From assembly GCA_044892525.1 (NCBI GenBank), contig CM097885.1, forward strand, positions 210,738,001 to 210,802,000: a DNA stretch of 64,000 nt, in the 5' to 3' direction. Source of the stretch: Schmidtea polychroa (Eukaryota). Position numbers and translations under genes: made by a program. Under the pieces are notes generated by a model. It saw only the letters and a list, made by a program, of their open reading frames with translations, was not told the origin of the DNA and did no database searches. Each line of letters starts with the position of its first letter. Within the stretch, counting starts at the first letter, position 1. Shown piece after piece: positions 3,813 through 32,188 of this stretch.

Positions 3813-4031
3813 GTATTTATTAAACAAATTGACTATGAATCATTAAAAATATCGATGTTTCTTGATATTCATGAATTTTCAGCNNNNNNNNNNNNNNNNN
3901 NNNNNNNNNNNNNNNNNNNNNNNNNNNNNNNNNNNNNNNNNNNNNNNNNNNNNNNNNNNNNNNNNNNNNNNNNNNNNNNNNNNNNNNNNNNNNNNNNNNN
4001 NNNNNNNNNNNNNNNNNNNNNNNNNNNNNNN

Positions 4032-5019
4032 GGACTACAGATCTTAACACAAATGACTCCAATAAATTAATTAAGATAAATAAATAAAAATAAATATAAA
4101 TAAGTTATATTTAAATGTGGTTGCGCGTCTAAATGTTCAAATCACTGAATTAAAAACAAAAACTCCTTTCTCTTTTTATAAAAATGTATTTTATAATTTA
4201 CAAATGAACTTTATAATATATGTACAAAGAGTACAAGAAAACGGATTTATTAATCCTTACTGTTTACCACAGCCTGCAAGAAATCGATGGCTCCTTTGTA
4301 GCACAACGATCGCTAAATAAATTGAAAAGATGATGGTAAAGCAAGAGGGCTGATTTTGGGGCCACCAGGTAACACGAAAGCCGCTATCTGTGCTTTGTGT
4401 TCGCTTTATTTTAACTGTCTCACTTCACAAGGATAATTATTTATCCTTACACAACTCGAATACTAAACTTCTTTTACCTTCTAGATTGATGGCTCCTTTT
4501 CCGTCTTTCTTTGTTTCACGATTCTGTTCAAATTTTTCTCCAGAAATATTCTCGCTCTCTTTCTTGTTTGTTCGGTTTGACAATTTATAGTCACTTTTCA
4601 AGTTTGAAATTGATCTGGAATTTGAGTTGGATTGTCGTCTGGTTGTTTGATGATCACAGTGATTCTTTAATCACGTTTTCTTTAAAAATAATAATAATTT
4701 TCTAAATTATTGTTTCAATTGTTTTTCCCACTTTCTTGCCAGTTTTCTTGTCCGCAAGTTATCGTCAATTTTATCGTCCCTTGGTTCTCGTTTTGAACCA
4801 GTATTTATATTACATTTTAATTAATTATTATCTTAATAGCAATTTTATAATTACTATATATAGTAATAGTATTATCAAATATTCCTATATATTACTTAAT
4901 TCTATTAATAGTAATTAATAAAACCTATCTTTTATTTTCAGTAATTTTTATTTATACTATTTCTAATTTTAGTAATTTTTATTTATTTAATCAACAAGGC
5001 TCCAGGCCTATCCCTAACA
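4032..5019 (-). repeat. 3' LTR (outer ~19 nt hidden in N run)
   Basis: Matches 18120-19160 except for two substitutions I could find and a 72-bp indel; on the element strand it begins TGTTAGGGAT at 5019. Confidence 0.95.
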
Positions 5020-5036
5020 AGTCTTACCCCCTAAAA
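5020..5036 (-). promoter_or_regulatory. Polypurine tract (plus-strand primer site)
   Basis: Element strand reads ttttAGGGGGTAAGAct immediately before the TG of the 3' LTR. Confidence 0.75.
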
Positions 5037-5346
5037 GATTTTCGTCTCGAAAACAAGACAAAACCAAGACCAAAGAAAAGCAATTGGTAAACAGTATTAC
5101 AATAAAACATAAAAATTATCAAATAAGACAAAACACAAAAATAAATGTTTCAGATCACAAATAATGAATGTCAAAACACAATAACACAAATCATAATAGT
5201 TAAGTCATTTTGTACACATTTGAATTTGACGACACGTGTTGGGTGGCAACACTCTCAGATTAGATATCCAGATCATCGGGATCTGGGTCGGGAACTTTGT
5301 AAAGGTGCAGCTCCTTTGTGCTGTAGCTATTCACAACGACGTATTG

Positions 5347-5997
5347 CTACAACAACTTCTTTTTTCTCTTCTGCAAGACTTCTGGCTCAAAACTCACTGC
5401 CAAGGGTTTACCATCCAGAGCACTCGTTAGTATGACTGTAGACACTACGTAAGGGATCCCGTCTACGTCATACACATCATATTTTTGATTATTATTGACT
5501 GCCATTCTCGTGACTGGTTGGCAGTCATACTCCTTCGTTCTGGGTTTCCATTTACTATCCGGACGTTTGTACCATATTGTTTCGAAACCGTCCACATCAA
5601 CCGAAACTGGTTTCTTGATGATATTCTCCTTGGCAATCTTGAACATTTTCTGTCTAACCACAGGTTCAGATTTAACCTTTATTGCTTCCTGCATCTCCTT
5701 AACTGGAGGTTGAAAGGCAACTTCCATAATGTCATCATCTGGTTCGCTGAATATCTTTTGAGGTTTATTATTCTTATCCTCCAAACTGCTGGGTGTTTCT
5801 TTTGTCGTTCCTTCCGACGGTTTAACAACTTTCTTCAACTTTAACTTCGACTTGTCTCTTTTTATGGGTAACATTTTCTTTAACATCTTTTTCACCTTGC
5901 CTCCTTCTGGATTTTCTTTTCTGACCGCACTATCCGATTTATCCTTTGGCTGATAGGCAGCTCCCGATGATTGTTTAGGTGATTTCGCTGTCTCCAT
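5347..5997 (-). CDS. Retroelement accessory ORF, 216 aa, Lys-rich, C-terminal NLS-like QKRKKKLL; function unknown
   Basis: Open ORF on the element strand between the exonuclease ORF and the 3' UTR; no family recognised. Confidence 0.6.
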   Translation of the reverse strand: METAKSPKQSSGAAYQPKDKSDSAVRKENPEGGKVKKMLKKMLPIKRDKSKLKLKKVVKPSEGTTKETPSSLEDKNNKPQKIFSEPDDDIMEVAFQPPVKEMQEAIKVKSEPVVRQKMFKIAKENIIKKPVSVDVDGFETIWYKRPDSKWKPRTKEYDCQPVTRMAVNNNQKYDVYDVDGIPYVVSTVILTSALDGKPLAVSFEPEVLQKRKKKLL

Positions 5998-6001
5998 TTC
6001 A

Positions 6002-7534
6002 CTAGCACATAGATATAGCTGGAGGTGGTAGATCCACAGGTGATTTTCTCTTAGGCTGTGGTTGTTCTGATGTAGATGGTTGCTCGGGTAATCTCCTCTT
6101 TTGCGTCATTTCCTGCTCAACTATTGCTGCTGTAGTTGCAGAAATGAATTCCTCCTGGGGTATCGTGATATGGTCTAACCATTCGTTTCTGATATGTAAA
6201 TAAACAGCACGTATTGCCAGTGCCTCATTGGTGACCACTAAATTCCTTGGTTCTCCGGGAACCGTACGTAGGAAAGTCTTTGTCAAGAATCCCAATCTGT
6301 AATGACCATGAATCTTTGGGACCCCTCTGGTTTCCAATAGTTTATTTGCAGAAAGATCACGAATACCCAATATTCGCTGCACTGGTAGATTGGCTACCGA
6401 GATCAGATCTTTAAGTAAAATAACTACAAGTATTTTCTTATCACAGATCTTTCTTATCAGATGATAACAATCGTCTTCGTCTAGGTTTCCTCTGATATCA
6501 GGTTCCTTTAACTTGTATTGGTGCGTTTGGTAGTGTTTTACAGGGTCTCTGGGAGTCACTACCGCACTCAATAAATTATTTCCTCTCATATCCATAATTG
6601 CGATTTGGATAATTGTCTCCTTCAATTCGATTCGGGATTTGGCAAAACCTGCCGATATGAAAATTGTAGCCTCGTCCTCCTCGGCTTTGGTTAACTTCTT
6701 CCTCACAAATGATTTACATTGCTGTATATCAGCTTCATTTACATTATAAATCCAAGTTGGCTCGTTTTTGCTAACTATAGAGTATGGTTTCCTGAAGTCT
6801 AAGATTTCCACTACGATTATGGTGTCCACCACCGCTGCCTGGATCATAATATTCCGTTCTCGTCCATCAGCGTGGTATATCTCCAGAGTACACTGTTTTT
6901 CTAATTCAACAGGTAGCTCTAAACCCGTCATAAACACAGTAAATGGCCTATTGATCGCATGGATCCAAATGTTTTCTACTTTCGGACATGAACCATACTC
7001 TCTACATAGTTCCCCCAATTTTAATCTACCTTGGTTATTTATAACCGTTACCATCATTTGCCTTGGAGGCCCTCCTGGGAATTTGAAGTCGTTTGGAATA
7101 TCCACTCTCCTGGGATAATACCAATAGTTTGAGGTGAGGTGATTCATCTTTGCTGCTACCGTGGTTCCGATGAACCGATATACATACTCTTCTTTATAGG
7201 TGCTATACACTTCAGTTTCGACTCGAGTTTGGGAATTGTAAGTTGCCAATGGGTGTCGTCGATTTGCTTTGACTGGCGGCTTTGATTCTCTGTTATAATT
7301 CATTTTTCTAAAAATAAAATAATTAACAGCTTTTATCACTTCCGTGATAGACCCTCGCAGGGTAACCAAAGTCGACATACGCTGATGTCTGATTTTACCG
7401 ATGCTCATTTGAGCCCACATTAGTCTACATACTAATATAAATAACATATAAAATAAATAGCTATATATATTTACACTTCCTAGTATATGGTGAGACTTTC
7501 TCCCTATACCTCGGTTTCGTAAATATTTTCCCAA
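6002..7534 (-). CDS. Accessory ORF with an unknown N-terminal domain and a REX4/ISG20-like DEDDh exonuclease domain (about 6170-6672), catalytically degenerate
   Basis: QIAIMDMRGNNLLSAVVTPRDPVKHYQTHQYKLKEPDIRG..IRKICDKKILV..KDL..IRDL..YRLGFLTKTFL..NEALAIRAVYLHIRNEW parallels REX4 RVSIVN..G..YDKYVKPTEPVTDYRTAVSGIRPENL..VAEMLKGRILV..NDL..IRDT..PSLRLLSEKIL..QDAQAAMRLY..KKEW; ExoI DxE appears as ISA. Confidence 0.75.
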   Translation of the reverse strand: MGKYLRNRGIGRKSHHILGSVNIYSYLFYMLFILVCRLMWAQMSIGKIRHQRMSTLVTLRGSITEVIKAVNYFIFRKMNYNRESKPPVKANRRHPLATYNSQTRVETEVYSTYKEEYVYRFIGTTVAAKMNHLTSNYWYYPRRVDIPNDFKFPGGPPRQMMVTVINNQGRLKLGELCREYGSCPKVENIWIHAINRPFTVFMTGLELPVELEKQCTLEIYHADGRERNIMIQAAVVDTIIVVEILDFRKPYSIVSKNEPTWIYNVNEADIQQCKSFVRKKLTKAEEDEATIFISAGFAKSRIELKETIIQIAIMDMRGNNLLSAVVTPRDPVKHYQTHQYKLKEPDIRGNLDEDDCYHLIRKICDKKILVVILLKDLISVANLPVQRILGIRDLSANKLLETRGVPKIHGHYRLGFLTKTFLRTVPGEPRNLVVTNEALAIRAVYLHIRNEWLDHITIPQEEFISATTAAIVEQEMTQKRRLPEQPSTSEQPQPKRKSPVDLPPPAISMC

Positions 7535-7941
7535 TAACGAATATCCCGTATGTTTAATCTAAACATCCAAAGGGTGGCTAATATCAAAATTAAAATCATG
7601 CAAATTACTCCCCCTATCATAATTAACAATAGCCATGTTGGCGTTTTATCTCTTGTTGTCCCCTTTAACGTATTTTGACAACTACAATTATTAATTATTT
7701 TAGTTATGCGGGGCTGTTTTACACTCGCTACCTTTCTAATACTGAACCAATCCAAAGCATTTATTCCTTTACAACCAGGAATACTCACTAACCTAGCCTT
7801 TCCTTCTTTGCTAGTTAGTTCTCCCTTTGTGGGAGGTAATAGATTTACTATTTCTTGATATATTGTATACCAACCGGTTTCTCCGTAAATTCCAAATACG
7901 AAATATTCGCCTTTGTCACGGTATCTGGTTTGATTGTCCAT
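7504..7941 (-). CDS. C-terminal part of a single-pass membrane protein (TM WLLLIMIGGVICMILILILATLWMF; tail ends ENIYETEV)
   Basis: Strong hydrophobic segment. The reading frame downstream of the TAG at 8067-8069 stays open to about 7850 and can join this ORF by +1 A at 7943-7946. Confidence 0.65.
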   Translation of the reverse strand: MDNQTRYRDKGEYFVFGIYGETGWYTIYQEIVNLLPPTKGELTSKEGKARLVSIPGCKGINALDWFSIRKVASVKQPRITKIINNCSCQNTLKGTTRDKTPTWLLLIMIGGVICMILILILATLWMFRLNIRDIRYWENIYETEV

Positions 7942-8066
7942 CTTTTACTTAGATACGCATGGTTGAGCACTAATCTCTCGACTTGCTGGTCATTTTCTAA
8001 TATGACGATTAACGCAATTTTATTATTCGTCCTCCAATCGTGAGTGGAAGATGTATCATTTCTTTT

Positions 8067-9482
8067 CTACTGTGGATGAGTAAATCTAACTATCTGCCCG
8101 AGATATGAAATCTCTACTTTTTTGGTAAATTTTGCAGTCTTCAAAATCCATGCTGCTTTATCTACACAATCTCCTCCATCTGCAAAAACGTTTGGGTCTG
8201 CAAAGAATGTCTTGATTTCTAATAGATAACTTGTATTCGGCATAAGTCCCTCTATTACTTTTACTCGATCCCGTGTATTCAAGTGAAATGATATCCCTCT
8301 TTCAGCAGCTACCAAATATAAATCATATCTGTGCCATTGTATATTCGTTAAATGAAATCTGAATGCTCTATCTGTTCGTTGGTATTCGATATCTGGATGT
8401 TGACTGGCTTTAGGTGTAAATACCTCGAATGCTTGTCCAATCATCATGACACAACTAATCACAGCTAGAAATGTAACTGTTTTCGGGATTTGCCGAGATC
8501 GTAAAGGGTATCGTTCCGGTTGTCCCTTTAGGATACTTTTATATGATTCTAACGTTTTCTTTTTCGATTTCTTATCTATTTCGAATTCATCAATATCGGA
8601 TTTTGGTTTCTCCTTTTCTGGTGGAGCTATCCTTTTACATCTGTTTGCATGAACCATAATCGGTTCTGCTTTTCTGTTTGCTACTAACTGCAAGACTAAA
8701 TTGGTTTCTGTAACTTTCAATATTTGATACGGCCCTTTGTAATTTCTCATTAATTTTGGAGATAAACCTTTTTTGTTGTAATGTCCTTCTAACATGACAT
8801 AATCTCCTACCAAAAACCCATGATCCTTCGCTTTACGATCATGATATTCTTTCATTGTTTCTTGGTTATAACGAATGTTCAAACCTGCTTTCTCCCAGGC
8901 TTCTTGCATTCTCTCTCTCATCTCGAATAAGTAATTTCCTTCGTCACAATTCTGTGAAGCTTTCGGATAAAATATAAGATCCACTGGCATCTTGCTATGC
9001 CTTAAATACATCAGATAGAAAGGTGTTTCTCCCGTTACTGAATGAACAGCATTTCTATACGCAGATAAACATGATGGTATGTGTACATCCCAGTCCGTCT
9101 GACCTGAGTTTACGTATGATGATAACATGTTTGCCAAGGTTCCATTGAACCTTTCTACCAATCCATCCGTCTGTGGGTGGTATGGTGAGGTATTTAATTT
9201 TAAAATACCAAAGTAGTCATTTATACTCTTTAACAGATTACTCATGAAATCCTTTCCTCTGTCGGTAAGTAATTTTGTTGGAACACCATATCTGAATACA
9301 ATTTGTTCTACAAAGATTCTGGCAATTGTGTCTGCCTTATGATTCGGAATTGGGAATGCTTCGGGCCACTTGGTTAAGTAATCGCAAAATACTATGATAA
9401 ATTTATTTCCCATCTTTGATTCTTTAAACGGTCCTAGTACGTCCATAGCAGTCATCTCCATTGGCGAGGACGGTACTGGCAT
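8067..9482 (-). CDS. pol: Integrase core plus GPY/F, followed in frame by a signal-peptide-like segment and an FN3-like domain
   Basis: AMDVLGP / LTDRGKDF / DGLVERFN (DDE), YKGPYQI, RYPLRSR; then TVTFLAVISCVMMIGQA and VIEGLMPNTSYLLEIKT (FN3 strand E-F signature like ITGLKPGTEYEVRV). Confidence 0.92.
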   Translation of the reverse strand: MPVPSSPMEMTAMDVLGPFKESKMGNKFIIVFCDYLTKWPEAFPIPNHKADTIARIFVEQIVFRYGVPTKLLTDRGKDFMSNLLKSINDYFGILKLNTSPYHPQTDGLVERFNGTLANMLSSYVNSGQTDWDVHIPSCLSAYRNAVHSVTGETPFYLMYLRHSKMPVDLIFYPKASQNCDEGNYLFEMRERMQEAWEKAGLNIRYNQETMKEYHDRKAKDHGFLVGDYVMLEGHYNKKGLSPKLMRNYKGPYQILKVTETNLVLQLVANRKAEPIMVHANRCKRIAPPEKEKPKSDIDEFEIDKKSKKKTLESYKSILKGQPERYPLRSRQIPKTVTFLAVISCVMMIGQAFEVFTPKASQHPDIEYQRTDRAFRFHLTNIQWHRYDLYLVAAERGISFHLNTRDRVKVIEGLMPNTSYLLEIKTFFADPNVFADGGDCVDKAAWILKTAKFTKKVEISYLGQIVRFTHPQ

Positions 9483-10632
9483 TGGTTTTAATGGAACATG
9501 CGGTTTCCTGCCTGTGTTTTCTGGTTATACATATCTTACACGATTGACACCACTTTTTAACATCATCTTTCATATCTGGCCAGAAGTATTTCATTTTTAA
9601 TCTTGACAGTGTATGTCTAGCTGAGAGATGTCCTCCCAGTGCTCCATCGTGGTATTGTAATAATAGTGATTCTCTGTATTTCTTTGGTACTAATATTACA
9701 TTATCCCTTGATTCAACGTATTTGATTAGACCTTCTTCCAATATGAATTTATCTTTATGTTTCTCCCAATATTTCTGAAATTCATTTGGTATGGCCTTTG
9801 CTTCTATAGCTTGTCTGATCATATTGATTTCGTCATCATTTTTCTGTGCTTCTACTAAATCGCTCAAAGTGTTAGCCTCTCTTGTTAGCATGAAGATTGT
9901 TCCTTCTAATCTTCCTTCATATATATCTTCTAACTCAGGCTCTTGCTCCATTCGTGATAATGCATCTGCATTACCATTAGCTTTACCTTTACGATATACA
10001 ATTTCGATATTATATGGCTGTAATCTCAATGCCCATCTGACTAACTTTGATGCTTCATCTCTATGTTTTAACAGCCATTGCAATGGTCTATGATCTGTAT
10101 AGAAAATTACCTTTCTACCCCATAGGTAATGACTAAATTTTTCCACTACAAATACTAACGCTAATGCTTCCAATTCTATTACAGCATAACTTTTTTCGTG
10201 TGGTTTCAATCCACGACTTGCATATGCTACTGCGTATTCATCGCCAATTTCGTCTTTCTGTCCCAAAACTGCACCTATACCTCTTGTGCATGCATCGGTC
10301 ATCACCATGAATTGTCTTTTAAAATCTGGAAATCGTAGAATTGGTGGTTTGCATAGTGCATCTTTTAACTTATCGAATGCCTGTTGCTGATCTTCTCCCC
10401 ATAAAAATTTTATACCTTTCTTTTCTAAGGTAGTTAAAGGAAAAGCTATTGCTGAAAAATTTCGTATAAATTTCCGATAATATCCCGTCAACCCTAAAAA
10501 TCCTTTGATTTGTTTCACATTCACTGGTTGTGGGAAATTCTTCACTTTATCCGTATTTGCCGGATCTGTTCTTACGCAATCGTGTGATATTAAATGCCCC
10601 ACGCAAATCACTTCCGATTCTGCCATTTGCAT
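9424..10632 (-). CDS. pol: RT thumb/connection, RNase H and integrase HHCC zinc finger
   Basis: GFLGLTGYYRKFI, TDACTRGIGAVL, ELEALAL, YTDHRPL, NADALSR, HDGALGGHL..CQSCKIC. Confidence 0.95.
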   Translation of the reverse strand: MQMAESEVICVGHLISHDCVRTDPANTDKVKNFPQPVNVKQIKGFLGLTGYYRKFIRNFSAIAFPLTTLEKKGIKFLWGEDQQQAFDKLKDALCKPPILRFPDFKRQFMVMTDACTRGIGAVLGQKDEIGDEYAVAYASRGLKPHEKSYAVIELEALALVFVVEKFSHYLWGRKVIFYTDHRPLQWLLKHRDEASKLVRWALRLQPYNIEIVYRKGKANGNADALSRMEQEPELEDIYEGRLEGTIFMLTREANTLSDLVEAQKNDDEINMIRQAIEAKAIPNEFQKYWEKHKDKFILEEGLIKYVESRDNVILVPKKYRESLLLQYHDGALGGHLSARHTLSRLKMKYFWPDMKDDVKKWCQSCKICITRKHRQETACSIKTNASTVLANGDDCYGRTRTV

Positions 10633-12773
10633 TTGCTTGGCTTTACTTTCAGGTTTGCCATAATCAATCTTTTGAAAATGTCTTCAAGATGTTCCAAATG
10701 TTTATCTAAATCTTCCGAGAAGATGATAATATCGTCTATATATACCATTGCGTGGTGTGCATCCATCAGCATGATATTCATTGCCCTCTGGAAAGTTGGA
10801 GGGGCTCCTTTTAATCCAAACGGCATTACTAAATATTCGAAATGATTGCTACTTGTAGAAAATCCTGTCATAGGAATTGAGTCTTCGCTCATCTTTATTT
10901 GATAAAAGCCTTTCTGTGCATCCATCACAGTAAACAACTTTGAATTTTTCATTTTATCATAAATGTAATCTAGCAAAGGTAGCGGGTGATTATCACTAAC
11001 TGTTTGTTCATTTAATTTCCTATAATCATTACATAATCTAACTGAGACGTCTCTTTTAGCTACAACCACCAAAGGTGAGGAATATGGAGATTTACTGGGT
11101 CTGATTATATTATATTTTTGCATTAATTTAATTTGTTTATCAACGGACCCTTGTATACTTTGAGGTATTCTATACGGGCGTATTTTTATCGGTTTATTTT
11201 CTGTTAATTTAATTTCATGCTCTAAAATATTAACTTGCCCTAGGTCATATTCGTGCTTTGCGAAAACTTGGTCATATTTACGTAATAATTGATTGACTCT
11301 GATATTTTCTTTTCTAGATAAATCTTTACTATCGCAGCTCGGTGCGTCGTAATATTCGATATCAGGATCTCGTTCATCCTCTTCTACTGATAATATCGAT
11401 TCAGACTCTTTCTGCATGTTAGAAAGTTGTATCACTTTACCCACTCTAGTCTCTGGGTATAATCTCAATGATTTGCTCGCTAGATTCGTTAATCTAATCG
11501 GGATCCTTCCTCCCCGTACTGTTGCCAAGTTTTGCACCATAGGCGTTTTATACCTATTTACGAACTGCTCACTCGGTTCGAAAATAACATCTCCTTCCAC
11601 CTCTTGGTGTGTTGCCACAAAATAAACTGTTTCGGTCCTCGGTGGTATTGTCACCGTTCTATCCAAAAACACTACATCCACACTGTAGGTTTTCCGTTTT
11701 CTACCCCTCATTTTCACTAATTCACCTGTTGCACAATCGAATACGATATCTTTTAACTTTTTCAATAAATCCATTCCCACGATACATTCTGCCATACATT
11801 GTCTAGTGACCTTGATATCGTGTCTAAATTTTTGATCACACAACCTTAATTCGCAATCTAATGTTCCGATAACATTGATAGGTTGTCCATTTGCTCCCGA
11901 TGCAACAGTTAATGTCGGCACTATTGCTTGTAATTCTTTTTCGTTTAATAAATTTGCTTCTATCAATGTCAAATCTGATCCTGAATCAATGATGGCATGT
12001 ACCGTATGCCTGTTAACTTTTAATTTGATCGTAGGTTTATGAGTCTTTTTACCCATATTGACCATTAGTATTGTTGAAATTCCTCTAATATTATCTCTGA
12101 ACTTTTGTTGATCATCACTATCTTTGTCATTTTCTGATTTTATTTCATCTTTATACTCTTCCTTTAGCCGTTCCAATGTGCTAAATGGATATTTAGGTAC
12201 CATCTCTAATACTGATGTACCCAAGGGTGGCATTGTCTCGAACTTCATTTTATACGTCGGGTATGAGGTAGATGGTAATATATCTGTATTTGTTCTAAAC
12301 TCGAACCTCTTTAACATTTCCTCTTCAACTCGTTCTGGTATTATCTTTTTTCTACCCTCATATGGTGACAAATAATTCACGGGCCACTCCTGGCGTTTCC
12401 TCCTTTTCGCTTTAACAGTGTATTGTTGTAAAGTACTATTTTCAAAATTTTGAAATTTCGGTTTTTTGTTGTCTGGTTTTATTGAGGTGTTGTCTGAGGT
12501 CTCATAGCCCTCTAGGTTACCTCCCTCGTCAGAATTGTCATCGTCTCGATGACTAGGTTCATACATTATTAACTCATGCTTCTTTATAGTTTGTCTCTTC
12601 ATTCTTTTAATCTCTTTATTATGATGATGAAATACTGCAAAATCTGCACAAACTGGACACATTCCTAGTAGCAACTTCCAAGACCATCCCCCGATCTTGA
12701 AGAAATAATTGAAGAAAATAATTGTGATATGATTATTTTCAATATCATCACTATTGCATATATACCTGAACAT
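10608..12773 (-). CDS. pol: Env C-terminal end and cytoplasmic spacer, aspartic protease, reverse transcriptase
   Basis: IGGWSWKLLLG (env-type membrane-proximal motif) at the start, AIIDSGSDLTLI protease, SPYSSPLVVV, RLCNDYRKLN, MPFGLKGAPPTFQ, VYIDDIIIF. Confidence 0.95.
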   Translation of the reverse strand: MFRYICNSDDIENNHITIIFFNYFFKIGGWSWKLLLGMCPVCADFAVFHHHNKEIKRMKRQTIKKHELIMYEPSHRDDDNSDEGGNLEGYETSDNTSIKPDNKKPKFQNFENSTLQQYTVKAKRRKRQEWPVNYLSPYEGRKKIIPERVEEEMLKRFEFRTNTDILPSTSYPTYKMKFETMPPLGTSVLEMVPKYPFSTLERLKEEYKDEIKSENDKDSDDQQKFRDNIRGISTILMVNMGKKTHKPTIKLKVNRHTVHAIIDSGSDLTLIEANLLNEKELQAIVPTLTVASGANGQPINVIGTLDCELRLCDQKFRHDIKVTRQCMAECIVGMDLLKKLKDIVFDCATGELVKMRGRKRKTYSVDVVFLDRTVTIPPRTETVYFVATHQEVEGDVIFEPSEQFVNRYKTPMVQNLATVRGGRIPIRLTNLASKSLRLYPETRVGKVIQLSNMQKESESILSVEEDERDPDIEYYDAPSCDSKDLSRKENIRVNQLLRKYDQVFAKHEYDLGQVNILEHEIKLTENKPIKIRPYRIPQSIQGSVDKQIKLMQKYNIIRPSKSPYSSPLVVVAKRDVSVRLCNDYRKLNEQTVSDNHPLPLLDYIYDKMKNSKLFTVMDAQKGFYQIKMSEDSIPMTGFSTSSNHFEYLVMPFGLKGAPPTFQRAMNIMLMDAHHAMVYIDDIIIFSEDLDKHLEHLEDIFKRLIMANLKVKPSKCKWQNRK

Positions 12774-14311
12774 CCTGCTACAAAAATGCCAAAGCTTGTA
12801 AATCTACCCCAGATTTTCCGTATTACATTTGATGCAGCTTGTTTGTAATGTTCTGGTCCAAATAACAAGTTATAGTCCGGTTTTCCATCATATGATTGAT
12901 AAATTCTTGTTATTATTTCTGTCACTCCCCGATCTCTGATTTGGGGAAATACAATTGCTCTCCGAGCTTCTTCAATATCTTCCGGAGTATATACTCCTCC
13001 TTTTGACATCTCGTTTAATGGTTGAAACTCCATTTTAGTTTCTAACTTTGTCGCTTGGAGCACTTCAACTGGTTTTGAAGGCGGCTTTCTGTCTGGCAAT
13101 GAAATCCAAATATTGTTAATTTTGTATAATGGTGACATTGCTGGATTGCAAATTGCTGTTAATGGTGAGGTATCCTCCTTTAATAACTGATGTGATACTG
13201 GCATTAGGAATCTCAATTTTCCTTTATATTTCACTGGTAACTCCAATGTACATCGATCATATTTGGTAATTTCCACCTCTATTGCTTTGCACTGATAGCT
13301 ATAAATTGCTTCACCCAAAATTCTGCCGAATGTTCCTTCCTCTGTCAACATTGGCATTATTAAATCAGGATTAGCTATAGATATTGCTAATCTGTTTCGT
13401 ATTATTTCCCGGTTTAAACGACAGTCGTTCAGGATCACTTCCTGATACACATCTAATAATTGTTTCTGTAAATCATGATACAAGAAATCAATCTTATTAT
13501 TGATATACTTGGCTATTTTAATATCTGATAGATGTAATGATTCTGCTGCTGGAACATATTTGTATGCTAAGTATATTCCCTTGTAATTTGTTTCAAATAT
13601 TGGTACACCGCATTTTGTTGTCTGTTTCTTTCTGACTAAACGAATTGCATCTGTGGGGTCCTTGGAGACTAATACTACTGCTGTGCTTTTCTCCGGTACT
13701 ACTTCCTTTTTTGTTTTGTGAGCTATCTTGTCTCCCCAACCACTTTGTTGTGAGTCCTGAGACGTAAAGCTTTTTCCATCTAACCTTGTAAATACTACCT
13801 TTTTCAGGTATCCCAAATCACAAAAATCTCTCATTGATTGATACGTTAATACTGCCAAACTGGTTTTACAATAACCATATTTCACGTTGCATTCTGGATG
13901 AGACATCATTTTTCCCGTGGATACTTCGAAAGTTCCTTCGTACTCGATCAGCTCTACTGTGTAGTACTCAACCGTTACCACATAGCTTACTACATTAGAA
14001 CCTCTTACTTTCTTTCTACCATGACAAGAACCATCATCTGCTATCGGTCCTCCCCGGGTAATAGTTATACCCAACTTTTTCCCTTCTTCTGCGGTAATTG
14101 TTACCTCATGATCTATTTTAACTGTTTTTGACCGAAAAGCATTTATACAATCCTCTGGTGGGATGACTAACGGTATCGGAATGAGTTTAGCTCCTAGAAA
14201 TGCTGAATAACTATTCGATCCACAGTAATATTCGAACGTCGCTCTCTGTATTCGACATTCCCTCACTCTGGTTCTGTAAAATTCTGTTTGCTGATAAACA
14301 TGATATTCCAC
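12665..14311 (-). CDS. env: Envelope glycoprotein ectodomain and TM, chuvirus-G / herpes gB-like class III fusogen; N-terminus (LTAYDC, from ~14418) lies in the upstream ORF
   Basis: Cys pattern and motifs AYDC, ECRIQRATFEYYCG, YINNKIDFLY, NDCRLNREII, GEAIYSYQC, ELPV, GGVYT and a C-terminal TM (FGIFVAGCSGIYAIVMILKIII) match my recollection of chuvirus-like glycoproteins. Confidence 0.8.
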   Translation of the reverse strand: MEYHVYQQTEFYRTRVRECRIQRATFEYYCGSNSYSAFLGAKLIPIPLVIPPEDCINAFRSKTVKIDHEVTITAEEGKKLGITITRGGPIADDGSCHGRKKVRGSNVVSYVVTVEYYTVELIEYEGTFEVSTGKMMSHPECNVKYGYCKTSLAVLTYQSMRDFCDLGYLKKVVFTRLDGKSFTSQDSQQSGWGDKIAHKTKKEVVPEKSTAVVLVSKDPTDAIRLVRKKQTTKCGVPIFETNYKGIYLAYKYVPAAESLHLSDIKIAKYINNKIDFLYHDLQKQLLDVYQEVILNDCRLNREIIRNRLAISIANPDLIMPMLTEEGTFGRILGEAIYSYQCKAIEVEITKYDRCTLELPVKYKGKLRFLMPVSHQLLKEDTSPLTAICNPAMSPLYKINNIWISLPDRKPPSKPVEVLQATKLETKMEFQPLNEMSKGGVYTPEDIEEARRAIVFPQIRDRGVTEIITRIYQSYDGKPDYNLLFGPEHYKQAASNVIRKIWGRFTSFGIFVAGCSGIYAIVMILKIIISQLFSSIISSRSGDGLGSCY

Positions 14312-16224
14312 GTCTTCCCTTTTTGCAACTTATCTGGATATGCTTCCTTGCATTCCACTGTGTCTACTAATGAGTAGATTCGCGATAGTATTGGTTCACT
14401 ACAATCATATGCCGTTAGGGAATTTGTCTGTCGCAATATTCCCATCATTACCAACAACATCATCATCCAACTAGTAAATCCACCTGTTCCCCGTGGACTA
14501 CTTGAAATATTTTCTGTCAACAACTCTTCATTCAATTCATATTTTCCTTTCGTTTCTTTTATATCCCAAAACTTGTGCTCCGTCATCCATGTTCCGAAAT
14601 TCACTTCGGTGATATCAGTCAGCTTGTCTATAGCTGCTGGAATTTTCGACGATTCATCTTTAATTATGCTTAATGCATTTTTAAACATTAAGGCTAGAAT
14701 CGTTATCATTTTCCCTTTCGTCAGGCCTTCATCTATGAATTGCCCTGCTATTTCGAACATCTCCTGTTCCTGGAATCTTTTCCATAGCTTTCTTGACTTT
14801 TCTGCAATTTTGTCAACATTAACACTTTTATCTTTCTTAATTTGCCAATCGGGTTTGATCAGTCGTAAGATTTGATTTAATCTTTTCCATGTTTCCGTTT
14901 TATCACTAGCGTCTCCAACGCTTTTATCAATTTGGCTAGCTATCCCTGCTAAAGCCTGCTTAGTTACATTTTGTATTGTAACTGGTTTTAGAAGTTCTCT
15001 TGGAGGCGGGTTCATTTGACTTTTCCTCGGTCTACCCTTTCTCTCCCTTTTCTTTTTATTCTCTATTAACTTCGGGCTCACCCTTGCTCTTGGTGGCTCG
15101 ACTTGTCGCGATGTACTAGCTCCAACGTTTGTTTCATCTTGATTTAATTGTACTTCATTATCTTCCTCTGTCGGAAATATTTCGATCAACTCGTCTTCAG
15201 TGTTATCGAGTTCCTTGAGATACTTATCTATCTCTTCATCTAAATCTACTGTAGTTACGGGTTCCTGATGAGTATTCCCGTCTACTTGTTTTTGCTCAGG
15301 ATGTACTGTTTCATCCTCCATTTCAGCATTATCTGGCAATCTCAATGTTGCCCATTGATCCTCTGGAAACTCTACCAGTAATATTAATACGACTGTTTCC
15401 TCATTGGGAAAACATCCAACATCTACTAGAAATTCGTCGTCATCCACCTGACAACCATGTATCATTATTAGGAATGACTCTTTTAATATTTCTGATATCC
15501 TTTTTCTCAGTTTCTTTACCCTATGATAACATGAGAATTGTTGTATCAGGTGTCCTCTCCTGGGTATCCTGATCTCTAACGTCACTGGACCTTGTATACC
15601 TTCCAAATGCCTGATAGCATGTCCATTTTTAATCAACAGCATCTTTGTTTGTGTCTGAAATTGTGATGTCTCTTTTACTAAAGGCACCACCAATGGCATT
15701 ATCTCTCTAAGAGTATATACTGGGATTCGCAACTCCAGTATCCAATCCATTATCATCTTAATGGCTTCCCCATCTCTTGGGTTTTTCATCAGCTCGATTC
15801 CCAATCTATGTGGTACGGCTGATATTTGATTTAACTGATCAATTTCCATCTCGCTTATTGTAAGGACATTATCCAAGTCCACTACTGTAACAGTTTCCTT
15901 GTGAAACTTTGCTTTTATGACAATACTTTTCCCTGGTAATATACCACAATCTAACAGGGTTTCTCCCTCTAATAATCTTTCTCCCAACAAATATAGTTTA
16001 CATCTCAATTGAGGTTTTACCACAGAAACTCTCTTTGCCAATGCTTCTACCTTTTGACTTGGGTTAATTGTATATCTACGAAAACAACTTTTTGGGAAAG
16101 ATACAAAAATTGTAGAATCCTCCAGATTTTCTCTTTGTTTCCAATTTAGGCCAATATTTCTCAGAATTTCTCTCAATTCTGGATAATATTCCTCATTTCT
16201 GTCTAACTCTGATATGATATCCAT
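14263..16224 (-). CDS. 653 aa ORF: two (possibly three) ubiquitin-like domains, acidic linker, AT-hook/NLS-like KGRPRK, helical region, signal peptide and env N-terminus
   Basis: IFVSFPK..YTINPSQKVEALAKRV..KLYLLGERLLEGETLLDCGILPGKSIVI (15907-16110) and VTLEIRIP..RVKKLRKRIS..LIMIHGCQVDDDEFLVDVGC..VVLILL (15373-15585) follow the ubiquitin pattern; WMMMLLVMMGILRQTNS precedes LTAYDC. Confidence 0.75.
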   Translation of the reverse strand: MDIISELDRNEEYYPELREILRNIGLNWKQRENLEDSTIFVSFPKSCFRRYTINPSQKVEALAKRVSVVKPQLRCKLYLLGERLLEGETLLDCGILPGKSIVIKAKFHKETVTVVDLDNVLTISEMEIDQLNQISAVPHRLGIELMKNPRDGEAIKMIMDWILELRIPVYTLREIMPLVVPLVKETSQFQTQTKMLLIKNGHAIRHLEGIQGPVTLEIRIPRRGHLIQQFSCYHRVKKLRKRISEILKESFLIMIHGCQVDDDEFLVDVGCFPNEETVVLILLVEFPEDQWATLRLPDNAEMEDETVHPEQKQVDGNTHQEPVTTVDLDEEIDKYLKELDNTEDELIEIFPTEEDNEVQLNQDETNVGASTSRQVEPPRARVSPKLIENKKKRERKGRPRKSQMNPPPRELLKPVTIQNVTKQALAGIASQIDKSVGDASDKTETWKRLNQILRLIKPDWQIKKDKSVNVDKIAEKSRKLWKRFQEQEMFEIAGQFIDEGLTKGKMITILALMFKNALSIIKDESSKIPAAIDKLTDITEVNFGTWMTEHKFWDIKETKGKYELNEELLTENISSSPRGTGGFTSWMMMLLVMMGILRQTNSLTAYDCSEPILSRIYSLVDTVECKEAYPDKLQKGKTWNIMFISKQNFTEPE

Positions 16225-16236
16225 TACTTTGTCAAC

Positions 16237-17962
16237 CTAATTCTCATTAACGGGGTTTAAACGAATATTTTCTAATTTCTGTCTCATTTCTCTTTGCCAT
16301 ACCCTCTTGCGTAATAATACTTTTCTACAGTCATCGATGGGATTTCTTTCCTCTTTCGATGCTTCTCTAACCTTTATTGGTTCGCTACCACACTCACCTC
16401 GCACGGATGATGTGGCTATAAGAACTTCCGGCTCACTGACCGAAGCCCATCTTTTTTCCAAAACCTCTGTTGGAACAATTACATTAGCTACTGGATCCAT
16501 GTCCTTACGATTTTTAACTGGTGAAACCGGTAAACCTTCTATTTCTCTGTTGGCTTCTGGCTCCCTGGCCATAGCCACTAGATTTTCCTGGGTGAAACCT
16601 GTAAACCCTCACAGACCTCTGGTTCTATGACCATAGTCTTTTCCTCTTTGTCCTCCCTTGAACTCACTTGAAGCATCAACACTTCAAGTTCTACATAATT
16701 ATTTTTATTTCGCCTTTTTCTGGCTGATGTCATATAAACACCTTCATTTTCATCGTACCCATCAGTTTCATTTGTTGTTAGCCTTGCTAACCTGTTTCTC
16801 TCTTCTTGAATTTCTAATTCAAGCTGCTGCAAATACGTTAATTTGTGGTCTGAATTCACTGCAAACGTTGTCTGCTTTGATCGATTATTACCATTGTTGC
16901 CACTACCATTATTATTAGATAACTGATTCTGTGGACATGAACGCATAATATGACCAAATTTTCCACACTTATGACATTTAATTTTACCCCCCGAATTTAC
17001 TTCATCCCTTTAAATATTATTATTAAAATTATTATTTCTACTCTGAAAATTATTATTATTATTATTACCACGAAAATTCATATGGGGGCTTCTATTTCTA
17101 TTACTGTTATTATTTGAATTATTCCCCCCAAAACTAGCTTTACAAACTGACGCTACATGTCCTTTGCGCTTGCATTTCTCACAATTTAGGTCCGAAATTC
17201 TACAGTTTGATGCCAGCTGATTATTTCTCCCACACTTTGTACATAATTTGTCCCCTGGAGAATTATTCCTACTTTTACAATCTTTTGACATATGTCCCTT
17301 TTTGTGACAATTAAAAGACTCAATGTCTGACTTATTGCTACTAATTGCAAAATTATTTGACTTTTCAATGCTACTTCAATTAAACACGCTTTGCGAGTTA
17401 ATTCCTCTAAATTATCTCCTATGTGTAAACTGAGTGCATTTCTCATTGCAGACGATAACCCTGACCAAAACTGATCTTTCACTAATGCTCTAGTCGCATC
17501 ATTCCAGGCTGCCCTATTGCCAAATGCTCTCTCTGCCAACATCATTATTTGATATGAAAATTCCCCAACATGCTCACCCGAATTTTGTCGCCTGTTATAA
17601 AACTGTTGTCTCAGCACTCTAGTTGCATCCCCCGGTAATATTCTGTTTTGTAACGCTAATCGCAATACGTTCCATTCAACTGGATGCTCGGCTATTATAA
17701 CATCGTTATATATTTCCCGCGCCATCCCTTTTAAATATAAAGGTAATCTCAAAATCATTACCGGTTCCGGGAATCCTAATGCTCTGGCTAACTGAAAATA
17801 TTCGGACATAAATTGCGGAAACTCTCCTGGGTTTCCACTAAATGGTTTAATCGTAATTGTTGGGTATCTCATAAAATCTACCGCTGGTGGTTGAGCTACT
17901 GGCACATTATTATTTTCTAAATTATTCTCGTTTAAATTTTGTAAATTATTTATCTCTGCCAT
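16237..17962 (-). CDS. gag: Gag (capsid, four CCHC knuckles, C-terminal extension), split by two 1-nt slips and one in-frame TAA
   Basis: IKPFSG, LPLYLKG.A, RRQNSGEHVGEFSYQIMMLAERAF capsid motifs; knuckles SFNCHKKGHMSKDC, CTKCGRNNQLASNC, CEKCKRKGHVASVC, CHKCGKFGHIMRSC. ORFs 17010-17291 and 16578-16946 are in the same frame across the TAA at 17010-17012. Confidence 0.9.
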
Positions 17963-18079
17963 TATTTGCTGGTTTCTATTACCTGGTCTTAAATTTATTA
18001 CCCTTCTATTTCTTAACTCAATGATTCAAAAAGATGTTTGCCTTTTATAAATAAAATTCTTATTCCCCCCGTAAATTGT

Positions 18080-18097
18080 ATCACGTCGGGCTCACCA
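18080..18097 (-). promoter_or_regulatory. Primer binding site, tRNA-Trp
   Basis: Element strand TGGTGAGCCCGACGTGAT, 3 nt after the LTR-terminal CA; 17/18 identical to the tRNA-Trp PBS TGGTGACCCCGACGTGAT. Confidence 0.88.
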
Positions 18098-18100
18098 AAA

Positions 18101-19160
18101 TGTTAAGATCGAAAAACGGGGACTACAGATCTTAACACAAATGACTCCAATAAATTAATTAAGATAAATAAATAAAAATAAATATAAATAAGTTATATTT
18201 AAATGTGGTTGCGCGTCTAAATGTTCAAATCACTGAATTAAAAACAAAAACTCCTTTCTCTTTTTATAAAAATGTATTTTATAATTTACAAATGAACTTT
18301 ATAATATATGTACAAAGAGTACAAGAAAACGGATTTATTAATCCTTACTGTTTACCACAGCCTGCAAGAAATCGATGGCTCCTTTGTAGCACAACGATCG
18401 CTAAATAAATTGAAAAGATGATGGTAAAGCAAGAGGGCTGATTTTGGGGCCACCAGGTAACACGAAAGCCGCTATCTGTGCTTTGTGTTCGCTTTATTTT
18501 AACTGTCTCACTTCACAAGGATAATTATTTATCCTTACACAACTCGAATACTAAACTTCTTTTACCTTCTAGATTGATGGCTCCTTTTCCGTCTTTCTTT
18601 GTTTCACGATTCTGTTCAAATTTTTCTCCAGAAATCTTCTCGCTCTCTTTCTTGTTTGTTCGGTTTGACAATTTATAGTCACTTTTCAAGTTTGAAATTG
18701 ATCTGGAATTTGAGTTGGATTGTCGTCTGGTTGTTTGATGATCACAGTGATTCTTTAATCACGTTTGCTTTATTGTAGACAACTGTTGAACTTCTTAACT
18801 TAATTTTGATCAACAACAGTGATTCTTTAATCACGTTTTCTTTAAAAATAATAATAATTTTCTAAATTATTGTTTCAATTGTTTTTCCCACTTTCTTGCC
18901 AGTTTTCTTGTCCGCAAGTTATCGTCAATTTTATCGTCCCTTGGTTCTCGTTTTGAACCAGTATTTATATTACATTTTAATTATTTATTATCTTAATAGC
19001 AATTTTATAATTACTATATATAGTAATAGTATTATCAAATATTCCTATATATTACTTAATTCTATTAATAGTAATTAATAAAACCTATCTTTTATTTTCA
19101 GTAATTTTTATTTATACTATTTCTAATTTTAGTAATTTTTATTTATTTAATCAACAAGGC
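18101..19160 (-). repeat. 5' LTR (outer ~19 nt hidden in N run)
   Basis: Ends GATCTTAACA on the element strand; 72 bp longer than the 3' LTR. Confidence 0.95.
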
Positions 19161-20220
19161 NNNNNNNNNNNNNNNNNNNNNNNNNNNNNNNNNNNNNNNN
19201 NNNNNNNNNNNNNNNNNNNNNNNNNNNNNNNNNNNNNNNNNNNNNNNNNNNNNNNNNNNNNNNNNNNNNNNNNNNNNNNNNNNNNNNNNNNNNNNNNNNN
19301 NNNNNNNNNNNNNNNNNNNNNNNNNNNNNNNNNNNNNNNNNNNNNNNNNNNNNNNNNNNNNNNNNNNNNNNNNNNTTAAATAAAAATGCAAATACAAATA
19401 CAAATTAAATTTTCCACATTAGAAAGAAAAACATGCTAACAAAAGAAATATTTTTCAGAATTTTTATTTTGGTAATTGATAGAAATTGCGATGATTGCTT
19501 GTAACATTCGAATTTGTTGAATTCATCTAAAAAAATAATAATAACACTAGATTTTATTTATCATAATATAATTATTATATGAAATAAAATTACAAAATAA
19601 GATAATAATAAATTAACTATGTTTAATAAATTAAATAAAATAGTAGTTCCCGGGTGGTGGCAATCTAAATTGAAAACAGGCAGTTTGGGAATATTTTGTG
19701 TTCTTTGCATTTAATTAAACAAAATATACAACGACCGCTATTTACAATTGGAAAACCTTTTCTCGAACCTTTGAATACTAGCCAAGAATAAATGGCTCTT
19801 TGTAATACTCACGAGAAATGATAATAAAAGCAGTTTTTGATTTCATAATTCTCAAAATGGTAAATGATTCTGGTAACCTGCAACTTTTGAGGTAAATATT
19901 AATTATTGACACCTCGACAGATTTCTATTTCTTTTAGTTTCATTCACAATGATCATATTGTAAAATGTTATTATCAACCAAACAAATTATAAATTTTTAC
20001 ACTTCTCGCTAATATTTTGAAAACAACTTAATAAAACTCATCAAAATCCTTGAAATCTTTTTTCCTTACAAATTTAAGTCAAAAGTGTGTTTACGGTGCA
20101 TTTTAAAACTAAATTGACTCTAAATGTGCCCATTGCATTGGCACTGATTCTCACCTGGTCGCACGAAGAAAGTTAATTACTTTGATTAAATTATATTTAA
20201 TTGAATTAATTTAAATAATG

Positions 20221-26456: not shown

Positions 26457-28956
26457 CTGCAAGTAATTAATTAATAAATTCCAGTTTTTGTGATGACAAT
26501 ACAATCGTAAAATCTTTATAAACAATTCAAGTATGGATTTTTAAGCTTGTTCATTCGAACATTTACTTGATTCAGTTCAAAAATTTCTAATCTAAAACAA
26601 GTTATATATATATATATATATATATTCGCATCCGTTACAACATTAATATCTGTTTGCAAATCACTAAATAATTCCATAAATTTTATTCAATAAATTTTAC
26701 ACTCAAAAACTTGTCTTTCTTAATTTTGTTATTTAAACAAATTTCAACTTTCCTTTTAGAATATTTTTCGATAAAAATATTTTTTAAGAATGCTAAATTT
26801 CAGTCTTCTTTTTAAAATATTTTTCAATAAAAATATTTTTTTAAATTTAACAAAATTTCTAATTAAATCTTCAAAAATCTATCAACTTCCTCATAATATA
26901 TATATTTCTTGGTGGAGAGGGGTTATTTTAAAGCTTTTTAGAATGTTTTAAAACTTGCTCATTTACGAAATAATCATCTAAAATCTAACAAATATTAATA
27001 AAAGAATGACAACAGCTGTCATTATCGATACAACTCATTGATATATACTTACAAATTTAAAACAAGATCACTTGTTATTTAATTAATTAATAATTATTTA
27101 TTAATTATGACGAATACCACAAATTTCATTTCTGATTCTGCAAATAAAATAAAAATTTTCTTTAAAAAATAAAACAATCTTTAGTGATCGTTCAGAATTT
27201 TTTAATAATGGAAGGCATACAACATGACACAATATTAAAAAAATTAAAATGGTGTAGCAAAACTAAATAATGATTCCGGGCACCGAGTTTAATGATTCAC
27301 GGGGGATAATTCTTTTAAGAATTATTAAACAATAAAAGTACAATTTATAGTATATTTAAAATTATTAATTATAATGCAAATTAATAAAATGACCTAAAAT
27401 TATTATTTGTATTATTATAAATAATGACTAAATATTTGATTTTTGGAACAAACTAAAATAGAAAATATTGAATTTCATACCGAATTCCTTTCCATATTCA
27501 TAATTTTTGCGGCTAATAATTTCATTTCCCAAATCCAATTTTCGATTTTCTTGGGAATTCTAAATTATATTTCGTAAATATTTTGACTACTGTCAATAAT
27601 AAGTAGTGGTAATATTAGAAATGGGAATATCCGAATCAAAAATTGTATGAAATGTTACAGTCCAATAATTTAAAACGAATACCAAAAATAACTGAAAATA
27701 TTTTTCATTATTATAGCTGATAAAAATAATAATCGGTGATGTCGCATATGTATCATTTCTCTATGAAAGGTTCCTTTCATTGGTCTACATATACTCATTT
27801 AAATCTTTTCAAGTGGTTTTGTACTTAAGGTTGTTTCTGTTTCCTCTCTAATTTTGATTGCAAGTGTCTTTGTTTTTTGGCATGCTATACAGTTCTAAAT
27901 TGCTACTTTGTTTCTTTTGTTAAATCTTCCATGTAAAAAATTCCGTTGAATGTTGTTAAATACTTTCTGCATTTCTGCATAACAGTATTTCTTTTATCAT
28001 ATCTTGTCTTTTTCATTATGGTATTCATAGTTTGTTATTGTTCGTATATATTGTCTTTTATGATGATAAATTTATATTTTATATCTCTTTCTATTTCATT
28101 TTTATTTCTTAGATTTTTTTATTATCTTATTGCTGATCATTTACGTTATTTTCGATTGTTACTGCTATTAACGCCCGGATTTTGGGTAGGCATATCGGCA
28201 TTCGCATGATCGAATCCTTTACTGAATTCCATTTAAATGTACACTCCAATTGTATTGAAACTTGCATCCGTATCCAATATAAATTCTCTTTTAAAGTTTG
28301 GGAATACGAGTATCGGATTCATCATCAATGCCGGTTTCATTTCCTCAAATACTTTCTGACATTTTCTGTTAATAAATATTTTTTTTGTCATAGGTACATT
28401 CAGTTTACCTTGCTTTCTTTGCTTATTTTTAAATAAATTGTCTGCAGTAGTTACATCTTCTTAAGAAACTTCTTACATTCTTTACACATTTTGTCATTTC
28501 AAATTACTATATTGCTACGTTAGTCATTTTGGATGCCTTTGTTATACATTATATGTCCCCTAGAAAATTTACTTTTATTTCTGATATTTAACATTTTTCT
28601 AGGTTAATCCTTAGTTTCACCCTCGAGATATTTTCTTGCACTTTTCCTCATATCTTTTAAGGTTCTTCTATTGTTCTGGTAAATATTAATATATTATCTA
28701 GATCATTGGTTCCCAAACTTATTTGATCTATCACACCCTTTCCAGAAAAAATATTAATCAGCGCCCCCTGGATTTTTTTCAATTTTAATAGCATTTAAGC
28801 AGAAATATATATTAGTCGCATATGCTAAAAGAATTCGATTGACCAGAAAAGGAAAGTGATTCCCAGATCGGGAATAATTAACAAATATGGAAAGTGGTTG
28901 ATCAAGATGGTACTAATAAGGAAGTTAGTGATTAGTAAAAAAAGAGGTTATATAAT

Positions 28957-31900: not shown

Positions 31901-32188
31901 GAAGAATTTGTGTTAATTGTATATTGTAAAAATAGGATTGAAATGTTGTATGATTATCAGAGTCTGAGAAAGTCTCAATTTACTTAGTTCTCATTTACTA
32001 TAGTAAAGTACCGTAAATAAATGGGCGGCCGCTGCTTGAGAGTATCAGAAACTTCTCTGTCCTTGAGCTACCCCTAAATATTGTTCAATTGTGTTCATAT
32101 TTTGCCTGAATTTTTCTTTCATATATAGGAACAGAATGGGAGGGTAAGAAGGTAATATTTTGAAAGTTCAAAAATAAGCTCCACCCTA
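28957..32188 (-). mobile_element. hATm-like DNA transposon with intact transposase
   Basis: Right TIR TAAGCTCCACCCTA, degenerate left TIR aaaaaGGTGGAGCTTA, subterminal inverted blocks (ttagaggtagctcaag 29080 / cttgagctacccctaa 32062), candidate 9-bp TSD TTATATAAT (28948-28956, 32189-32197). Confidence 0.7.
29260..31527 (-). CDS. hATm-type DDE transposase, 755 aa, uninterrupted
   Basis: VVHWDGK, MCFDTTSSNTG, LACRHH, HHARWM, NHLWYLSE, VVNDHAERG motifs. Confidence 0.85.
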   Translation of the reverse strand: MSSVAKATRSQTELYLLGDSVTQLRGSKLPSLRMALGLFLHHHLELKETIRQSSAVTITEVSKFWQKARIPMRDHQNCQTKVEHAFEEWRLLKKNKARLSATQLARESAFSSKLEDLFDLAHADALTSPSVLQEDKNFLLAQREKGRRGSMTGADEKLAAKEKRSFERDKQMLARRQRMEQVKQLAASTAELISSSSETSLDGGNMKSGENLSDDAAGGSTFRTPKRKRGRKTVITPELAVALDRTKVSDRKAVFVIAKTAKSLGQNIDELVLNRDSIRRLRVEHRVQRAANIKAKFQDNVPLVVHWDGKLIPDLIGKEKVDRLPVLVSGKGVSQLLTVAKLPSGTGEAQAAAVYEAIKDWGIAKNIRAMCFDTTSSNTGRIAGACVLLEQKLQKELLSLACRHHIMELIIGAVFQVCMGASSSPEVALFKRFQEFWRFIDTAKYEAGTTADDVASLLEDIKQDTIDYANKYLEQSQPRDDYKEFLELVIVFLGAAPPRGVRFMAPGAMHHARWMSKVIYSLKIWMFKAQFKLTTAEERGLRDVCVFAVRVYLKAWISAPQAAGAPFSDLLLLKSLLEYSSIHAAISKATSRKFANHLWYLSEKLVSLAFFDSRVSSSTKRLMVSAMQNDENQDSDHCKRITVTLGSFKEKNLEDFVTAKSMILLQQLELPDGFLAVDPDLWGDRDDYKQAAETVTSLKVVNDHAERGVALIQEYSGLITRDETQLQFLLQVVQDHRKMYPNSRKKTLSAISGFT

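Follow-up and report, generated by a model that had tools for sequence, protein, structure and literature searches.

A 64,000-nt window of the Schmidtea polychroa genome (GenBank assembly GCA_044892525.1, contig CM097885.1, forward-strand positions 210,738,001 to 210,802,000; coordinates below are positions in this window) holds, on its minus strand, a long terminal repeat (LTR) retroelement in which the open reading frame (ORF) for the enzymes of Pol opens with what is, by comparison with its relatives, the tail of the envelope protein Env. Taken as a whole, the locus is very probably best explained as a ~15-kb Ty3/gypsy element with the order gag-X-env-pol (X being the conserved region between gag and env), from a family in which env and pol are read in one frame, and represented here by a copy that is broken or miscalled and does not use programmed frameshifting.

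Envelope tail at the head of the pol ORF

The pol ORF (10608-12773, minus strand) was confirmed at 721 codons, and its frame stays open for ten further codons upstream of the first ATG. It overlaps the env ORF (12665-14311, minus strand), which lies in another frame, by ~100 nt. We built a hidden Markov model (HMM) of the envelope membrane anchor plus tail from 11 relatives and compared it with both ORFs, four other ORFs of the element serving as controls. The first half of the model matched the C-terminal end of the env ORF (63 bits, E = 8e-21) and the second half matched the N-terminal part of the pol ORF (32 bits, E = 2.6e-11), while the four controls all gave E values of at least 0.2. The family model therefore detects both anchor and tail, split over two frames in the window. 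Because its two halves match the end of env and the start of pol, and the controls match neither, the beginning of the pol ORF is, on this comparison, a true continuation of the envelope protein and corresponds to its conserved membrane-proximal tail.

A preliminary description of this DNA, made from the sequence alone, had proposed that the pol ORF carries a membrane-proximal tail of glycoprotein type, and the HMM match bears this out. The peptide that it quoted from the start of the ORF is indeed present, though at residues 21-48 after the first ATG and not at the very start; the first ~20 residues, counted from that ATG, come from anchor-coding DNA read out of frame. The stop-free run that it described from the tail through a spacer into protease and reverse transcriptase (RT) was also confirmed, with a linker of ~175 residues. 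A family-specific model was needed to see the tail, as a Pfam scan of the first 80 and the first 240 residues of the pol ORF at E ≤ 10 returned no glycoprotein match. The same tail also occurs in stand-alone glycoproteins of ~650 residues: among 79 matches covering it, 36 end no more than 40 residues past the tail, 28 end at 41-150 residues and 15 at >150.

Env-Pol fusion among relatives

An exhaustive HMMER search with the env ORF returned 1089 env relatives, and many of the best of these are long. In P0006 (2855 aa), P0009 (2627), P0017 (3243), P0018 (2146) and P0154 (4844), a glycoprotein is followed by one or more aspartyl proteases, RT, RNase H and integrase. On five contigs from four public samples (L003-L007; Table 1), the ORFs run without interruption over 2146-4844 codons; their exact translations are the relatives' proteins, which are thus not spliced models. 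The domains of these contig ORFs read, in order, signal peptide, envelope, anchor, tail, linker, protease, RT, RNase H and integrase. Eleven relatives read the anchor-tail region in one frame, and the relatives' linker has no stop, separate start or frameshift between the envelope and Pol. According to the preliminary description, a stop together with a separate pol start in sister copies would speak against fusion; the relatives, on which this was checked, contain neither, and the fusion stands.

In L001, a decayed copy from a soil metagenome with 36% env identity, one frame covers both anchor and tail and, after a single in-frame stop, remains open into linker-like sequence up to the contig end. 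Just before env, each of the nine polyproteins examined shows a hydrophobic signal-like segment followed by a conserved mature-protein start, and in seven of the nine an anchor follows the signal-like segment at the same hydrophobicity threshold. Because env and pol form uninterrupted ORFs in relatives, we conclude from these alignments that the Env-Pol fusion is a family trait, and neither a product of chance nor one of programmed frameshifting. No LTR pairs were captured in the relatives' contigs.

Two of the matching records have unusual contexts. Contig L003 (NCBI DNYW01000170.1, GCA_003506685.1) comes from a bin labelled Flavobacteriaceae bacterium, yet carries a 2627-codon env-pol ORF of animal type, and is probably a eukaryotic contamination of that bin. 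A word-indexed protein search with tail and linker gave a single match, P0001 (metaclust), in which related env pieces with internal deletions, the tail and the linker are joined to a voltage-gated ion-channel domain (PF00520); this is probably a decayed copy read through into an adjoining host gene in a related species.

State of the assembled copy and alternative explanations

An uninterrupted env-pol ORF such as those of L003-L007 is absent from the window copy as assembled. When the uninterrupted env-pol ORFs of P0006, P0009 and P0154 are placed on the window, they reveal four frame changes there, two in env and two in pol. From gag to integrase, the breaks come to six frame changes and two internal stops (eight in all). 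As assembled, the copy is frame-broken or miscalled; the break between env and pol is one of eight and carries no particular message on expression. The two LTRs, compared over 4032-5000 and 18120-19160, are identical at 967 of 969 positions (99.8%) and show in addition one 72-nt length difference. Near-identical LTRs and frame shifts mostly in one direction are compatible both with assembly error and with a defective copy that was propagated in trans. The copy is young or recently inserted and broken as assembled, and nothing suggests a function beyond that.

The copy could be truly intact, the frame changes being base-calling or consensus errors in an AT-rich and homopolymer-rich genome, a scenario that we find credible while leaning somewhat against it. 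Eight breaks exceed the expectation for LTRs that have diverged so little, all but one of the six frame changes share a direction, and four occur within domains that relatives have in one piece. Two of the breaks, however, are in-frame stops, which length errors cannot produce, and defective elements copied in trans can also keep identical LTRs.

Alternatively, a programmed ribosomal frameshift in the ORF overlap could join Env and Pol, as it joins Gag and Pol in many retroviruses. The ~100-nt overlap of env and pol in different frames would suit such a signal, but the eleven relatives use a single frame, i.e., the two-frame arrangement is not conserved. Moreover, the frame switches between the anchor and the conserved tail, within a conserved stretch of protein where no domain border lies, and comparable frame changes occur in the env N-terminus, the RT and the integrase of the same copy. 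Since the relatives need no frameshift and the shift lies within a conserved segment, we consider this mechanism very unlikely, and we rejected it given the one-frame relatives and the other comparable breaks in the copy. It is likewise hardly believable that env and pol are separate genes, with pol expressed from its own ATG or a spliced RNA and the tail likeness due to chance: an ATG does stand at the head of the pol ORF and the Pfam model missed the tail in the pol frame, but the family HMM match is a direct continuation of the env match, the residues that follow the ATG derive from out-of-frame anchor DNA, and relatives lack a stop or a conserved start in the tail-linker region, so that we rejected this explanation on the HMM match and the uninterrupted relatives.

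Envelope glycoprotein and classification

The env ORF matches the Monjiviricetes fusion glycoprotein family PF24664 (E = 2.1e-67; 228 bits against a cut-off of 27). The match stops at the membrane anchor, and an N-terminal piece of env that lies in the frame of the upstream ORF matches positions 6-68 of the same model. When a profile of 36 env family members was compared with PDB sequences, it matched herpesvirus gB (E = 3e-4). An AlphaFold (AF2) model of the env ORF (predicted local distance difference test, pLDDT, 81.8) likewise has herpesvirus gB as its top PDB folds (E = 7e-11, template modelling score, TM, 0.35-0.40). Judged by these sequence and model comparisons, env belongs to the Monjiviricetes (chuvirus/nyamivirus-like) fusion glycoproteins and is of class III, resembling herpesvirus gB.

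The pol domains point to Ty3/gypsy. The order of the pol domains (Pfam RVP, RVT_1, RT_RNaseH, Integrase_H2C2 and rve) fits that group, and the best solved relatives of the RT are the Ty3 RT (4ol8, E = 5.5e-45) and Ty3 Gag-Pol (7q5b), followed by a PDB chain named "Enzymatic polyprotein" (8r0s, E = 8.3e-32) and by foamy-virus and retroviral RTs. Because env matches gB and the RT is closest to that of Ty3, the element is, as classified from sequence and predicted fold, a Ty3/gypsy (Metaviridae)-type LTR retroelement with a class III gB-type env.

Organization of the element

Between the LTRs, the minus strand carries gag, X, env, linker, protease, RT, RNase H, integrase and three more ORFs, with env located between gag and pol (Table 1). 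The element has a G+C content of 33-39%, against ~22-28% in the surrounding DNA. Runs of masked N truncate both LTRs at their outer ends and cover the place of any target-site duplication; the inner ends look like TG / CA; given the inferred boundary, the 3' LTR starts with TG. The 18-mer that resembles a primer-binding site (PBS) stands 2 nt after the CA that probably ends the 5' LTR and has the form of a complement of a tRNA 3' end. The window contains no tRNA gene with which to compare it.

Table 1. Features of the S. polychroa element in window coordinates, and uninterrupted env-pol ORFs on relatives' contigs in contig coordinates.
Feature	Position	Strand	Basis or remark
Whole element	about 4013-19179	-	~15 kb
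5' LTR	18101..19160	-	Repeat alignment; outer end within masked run 19161-19375
PBS-like 18-mer, starts TGG	18080..18097	-	Read directly from sequence
gag + X (conserved gag-env intervening region)	14497..17962	-	Broken as assembled: 2 frame changes and 2 internal stops
env: predicted internal signal peptide, class III (gB-type) ectodomain, anchor, conserved cytoplasmic tail	12570..14496	-	Broken as assembled: 2 frame changes
Linker, env tail to protease	12042..12569	-	~175 residues, open frame, fast-evolving
pol: protease, RT, RNase H, integrase zinc finger and core	8601..12041	-	Pfam; broken as assembled: 2 frame changes
Post-integrase region: signal-like hydrophobic segment and putative second membrane anchor	7504..8600	-	Translations
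Exonuclease-related ORF, 510 codons	6002..7534	-	BLASTP E 3e-12 to L004 9547-11622
Last ORF, 216 codons, lysine-rich	5347..5997	-	No family match
Polypurine-tract-like short purine run	5027..5032	-	Just upstream of 3' LTR; inference from sequence
3' LTR	4032..5019	-	Repeat alignment; outer end within masked run 3884-4031
Uninterrupted relative ORFs	L003 228-8111; L004 756-9323; L005 6512-21046; L006 3130-9570; L007 180-9911

In its N-terminal part, the window gag is similar to the L005 gag ORF (E = 1e-15) and to P0010, P0016 and P0018 at their N-termini. A putative gag-type zinc knuckle gives a weak match to PF14787 (E = 1.3e-4, 22 bits, under the Pfam cut-off of 27). X has counterparts in P0007 and at the end of the gag ORF of L005, and in the window its ORF passes without a change of frame into the env signal peptide and roughly the first 60 residues of env. 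Residues 51-102 of the ORF that covers X (14263-16224, minus strand) also show a weak ubiquitin-like match (PF00240, E = 0.007, under the cut-off). In P0018, P0010, P0016 and P0007, a single ORF holds gag, X, env and either the protease or the whole of pol, and only L005 has a separate gag ORF, in another frame. From gag sharing the ORF in relatives and X running in frame into the env signal peptide in the window, the primary product would probably be a Gag-Env-Pol polyprotein divided at an internal signal peptide. The preliminary description had Pol made as the cytoplasmic tail of Env rather than as Gag-Pol; the single Env-Pol ORF of relatives favors the first part of that statement, but "rather than Gag-Pol" goes too far, as gag stands upstream in the same ORF of the four proteins just named.

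Downstream of the env tail, the linker is charged (rich in K, E, S and D) and has no Pfam match. Its first part is 56% identical to P0001. In the pol ORF, Pfam places RVP at residues 245-341 and RVT_1 at residues 573-717. Looking up identical products for the pol ORF and for one host gene of the window returned nothing on record.

The region between env tail and RT varies among relatives. P0005, P0006, P0007, P0016 and P0154 have two or three tandem aspartyl-protease domains there, one of them DDI-like (PF09668), and P0154 additionally has ankyrin repeats and a C2H2 finger; by comparison, the window element has a single protease and an unrelated linker, in which no remote similarity to the relatives' extra DDI-like protease was found. 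In seven of 12 sequences (relatives and the window pol ORF), the first catalytic D-S/T-G is preceded, at a distance of 33-92 residues, by a hydrophobic-Tyr-Pro motif. In shuffled controls the mean was 0.9 and none of 2000 shuffles reached seven; the sequences are related to each other, which makes the count a lead only. The motif might be cut by the protease, as a site of the aromatic-Pro type, or act in budding as a late-domain motif of the YPxL type.

Beyond the integrase, the putative second anchor lies ~250 residues past the signal-like segment in the window element (~240-290 with the relatives included), and P0006, P0009 and P0017 have hydrophobic segments in analogous positions. The region showed no sequence similarity between the window and the relatives and no family match, and among the relatives only P0006 and P0154 resemble each other there. 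The pattern of hydrophobic segments suggests a second membrane-protein module at the end of Pol. As for the exonuclease-related ORF that follows, its counterpart L004 9547-11622 carries an RNase_T domain (PF00929), and an exonuclease-like ORF after env-pol is present also at L005 21702-22841. A Pfam scan of the window ORF did not detect RNase_T; this ORF differs in the stretch that aligns with the start of the L004 exonuclease part.

Outside the element, the window contains a DNA transposon, seen as a 379-codon ORF with Tc5/pogo-type transposase domains (DDE_1, HTH_Tnp_Tc5, BrkDBD; 39192-40331, minus strand). A 755-codon ORF without Pfam match (29260-31527, minus strand) lies within a G+C-richer stretch (28000-34000), and weak RT/RNase H-like fragments occur at 28197-28358, 32637-32966 and 46970-47203; the region of this ORF and the fragments are probably remains of other retroelements. 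Two host genes were found, a single-exon Cys-loop ligand-gated channel of 422 codons (53434-54702, plus strand) and a tubulin fragment (56532-57164, minus strand); they mark the host as a metazoan. For the channel, a protein with 87% identity exists only in metaclust, while named homologues are ~30% identical and spread over phyla.

Proposed expression of the fused polyprotein

Given the single frame of the relatives, expression could proceed as follows. The genomic RNA would be translated into one polyprotein, whose internal signal peptide would route the envelope ectodomain into the endoplasmic reticulum (ER), where signal peptidase would cut off Gag-X. The anchor would then halt transfer, and everything after it, from the tail through the linker to Pol, would trail from Env on the cytosolic side until the element's own protease released the enzymes. 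Such a topology would tether the Pol enzymes to the membrane. Tentatively, and with doubts that we consider substantial, we propose that a membrane-anchored class III fusogen carries the enzymes as its cytosolic tail, that enzymes, Gag and Env come in equimolar amounts from a single ORF, up to 4844 codons long and split by an internal signal peptide, and that a second membrane module and an exonuclease-like gene accompany them.

Several points weigh against Env-Pol fusion and the expression route derived from it. Close sister copies were found neither in the window nor in JGI metagenomes or IMG/VR, and the intact state of this lineage is therefore deduced from relatives with only 25-40% env identity. 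P0001, at 56-66% identity the only close relative, is a chimeric protein prediction without the anchor and is not traceable to DNA. The linker shows no similarity to distant relatives (E values of at least 0.2), i.e., it is not conserved. The topology, the signal-peptidase cleavage and the release by the protease are all predicted from translated sequence, and internal initiation at the signal peptide, or splicing to a subgenomic RNA, may provide another route to the same proteins.

If the proposed route is correct, these elements would follow a distinct assembly strategy among reverse-transcribing elements, one so far catalogued only as a change in gene order. The environmental contigs show that gag-env-pol is more than a reshuffling of genes, as Env and Pol, and often Gag, share a single frame with a predicted internal signal peptide. 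This raises the question of how the ratio of structural proteins to enzymes and the packaging of the enzymes are controlled when Pol is attached to Env instead of to Gag. Annotators of such elements should expect an "env" that lacks a stop, or a "pol" that lacks a start, as the normal case.

Comparison with known elements

Certain endogenous retroviruses (ERVs) of nematodes are reportedly built as a continuous gag-env-pro-pol ORF with Nyami/Chuvirus-like glycoproteins. Chary and Hayashi (eLife 2026, PMC13524379) describe GAG-ENV-POL Ty3/gypsy elements with HSV/gB-type ENV (HSV, herpes simplex virus) in Nematoda, Bryozoa and Platyhelminthes; for non-canonical nematode ERVs with swapped ENV and POL they credit Sacco et al. 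2022 (J Gen Virol 103:1739). A gB-type envelope gene in a GAG-ENV-POL arrangement has thus already been described in print, and the window locus adds a further example. As described in its title and in PMC13524379, the work of Sacco et al. concerns elements that resemble ours in a metavirus (Ty3/gypsy) backbone, a glycoprotein captured from an RNA virus and env placed before pol, whereas the window copy is frame-broken, a comparison made at the level of these descriptions only.

The "errantiviruses" of PMC13524379 share with the window element a pol of Ty3/gypsy type, a class III env of gB type (the gB fold of the window env being supported by its structural model) and the gag-env-pol order. 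Their GAG, ENV and POL, however, are given as three ORFs, whereas the window's relatives have one ORF with a putative internal signal peptide, and extra ORFs after the integrase. The words "fused" and "polyprotein" are absent from that text, and "continuous" appears once, in another connection; a second membrane module and an exonuclease-like gene were not encountered in those of its passages that searches for other terms returned. Mosquito BEL/Pao elements (Dezordi et al. 2020, PMC7642597) are comparable in that an LTR retroelement captured a chuvirus-type (Chuviridae-like) glycoprotein, but their backbone is BEL/Pao and that of the window element is Ty3/gypsy. These mosquito elements are not listed among the GAG-ENV-POL groups of PMC13524379.

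Drosophila gypsy and the classical errantiviruses resemble the window element in being Ty3/gypsy elements with an envelope gene. Their order is gag-pol-env, their F-type (baculovirus-like) env is expressed from a spliced RNA, and Pol is made as Gag-Pol. With flaviviruses and pestiviruses, the likeness would be one of mechanism only, as these are unrelated RNA viruses with no sequence or fold relationship to the element. Their polyproteins are encoded by one ORF in which internal signals and anchors thread the envelope proteins into the ER while capsid and enzymes stay cytosolic, and signal peptidase and a viral protease make the cuts.

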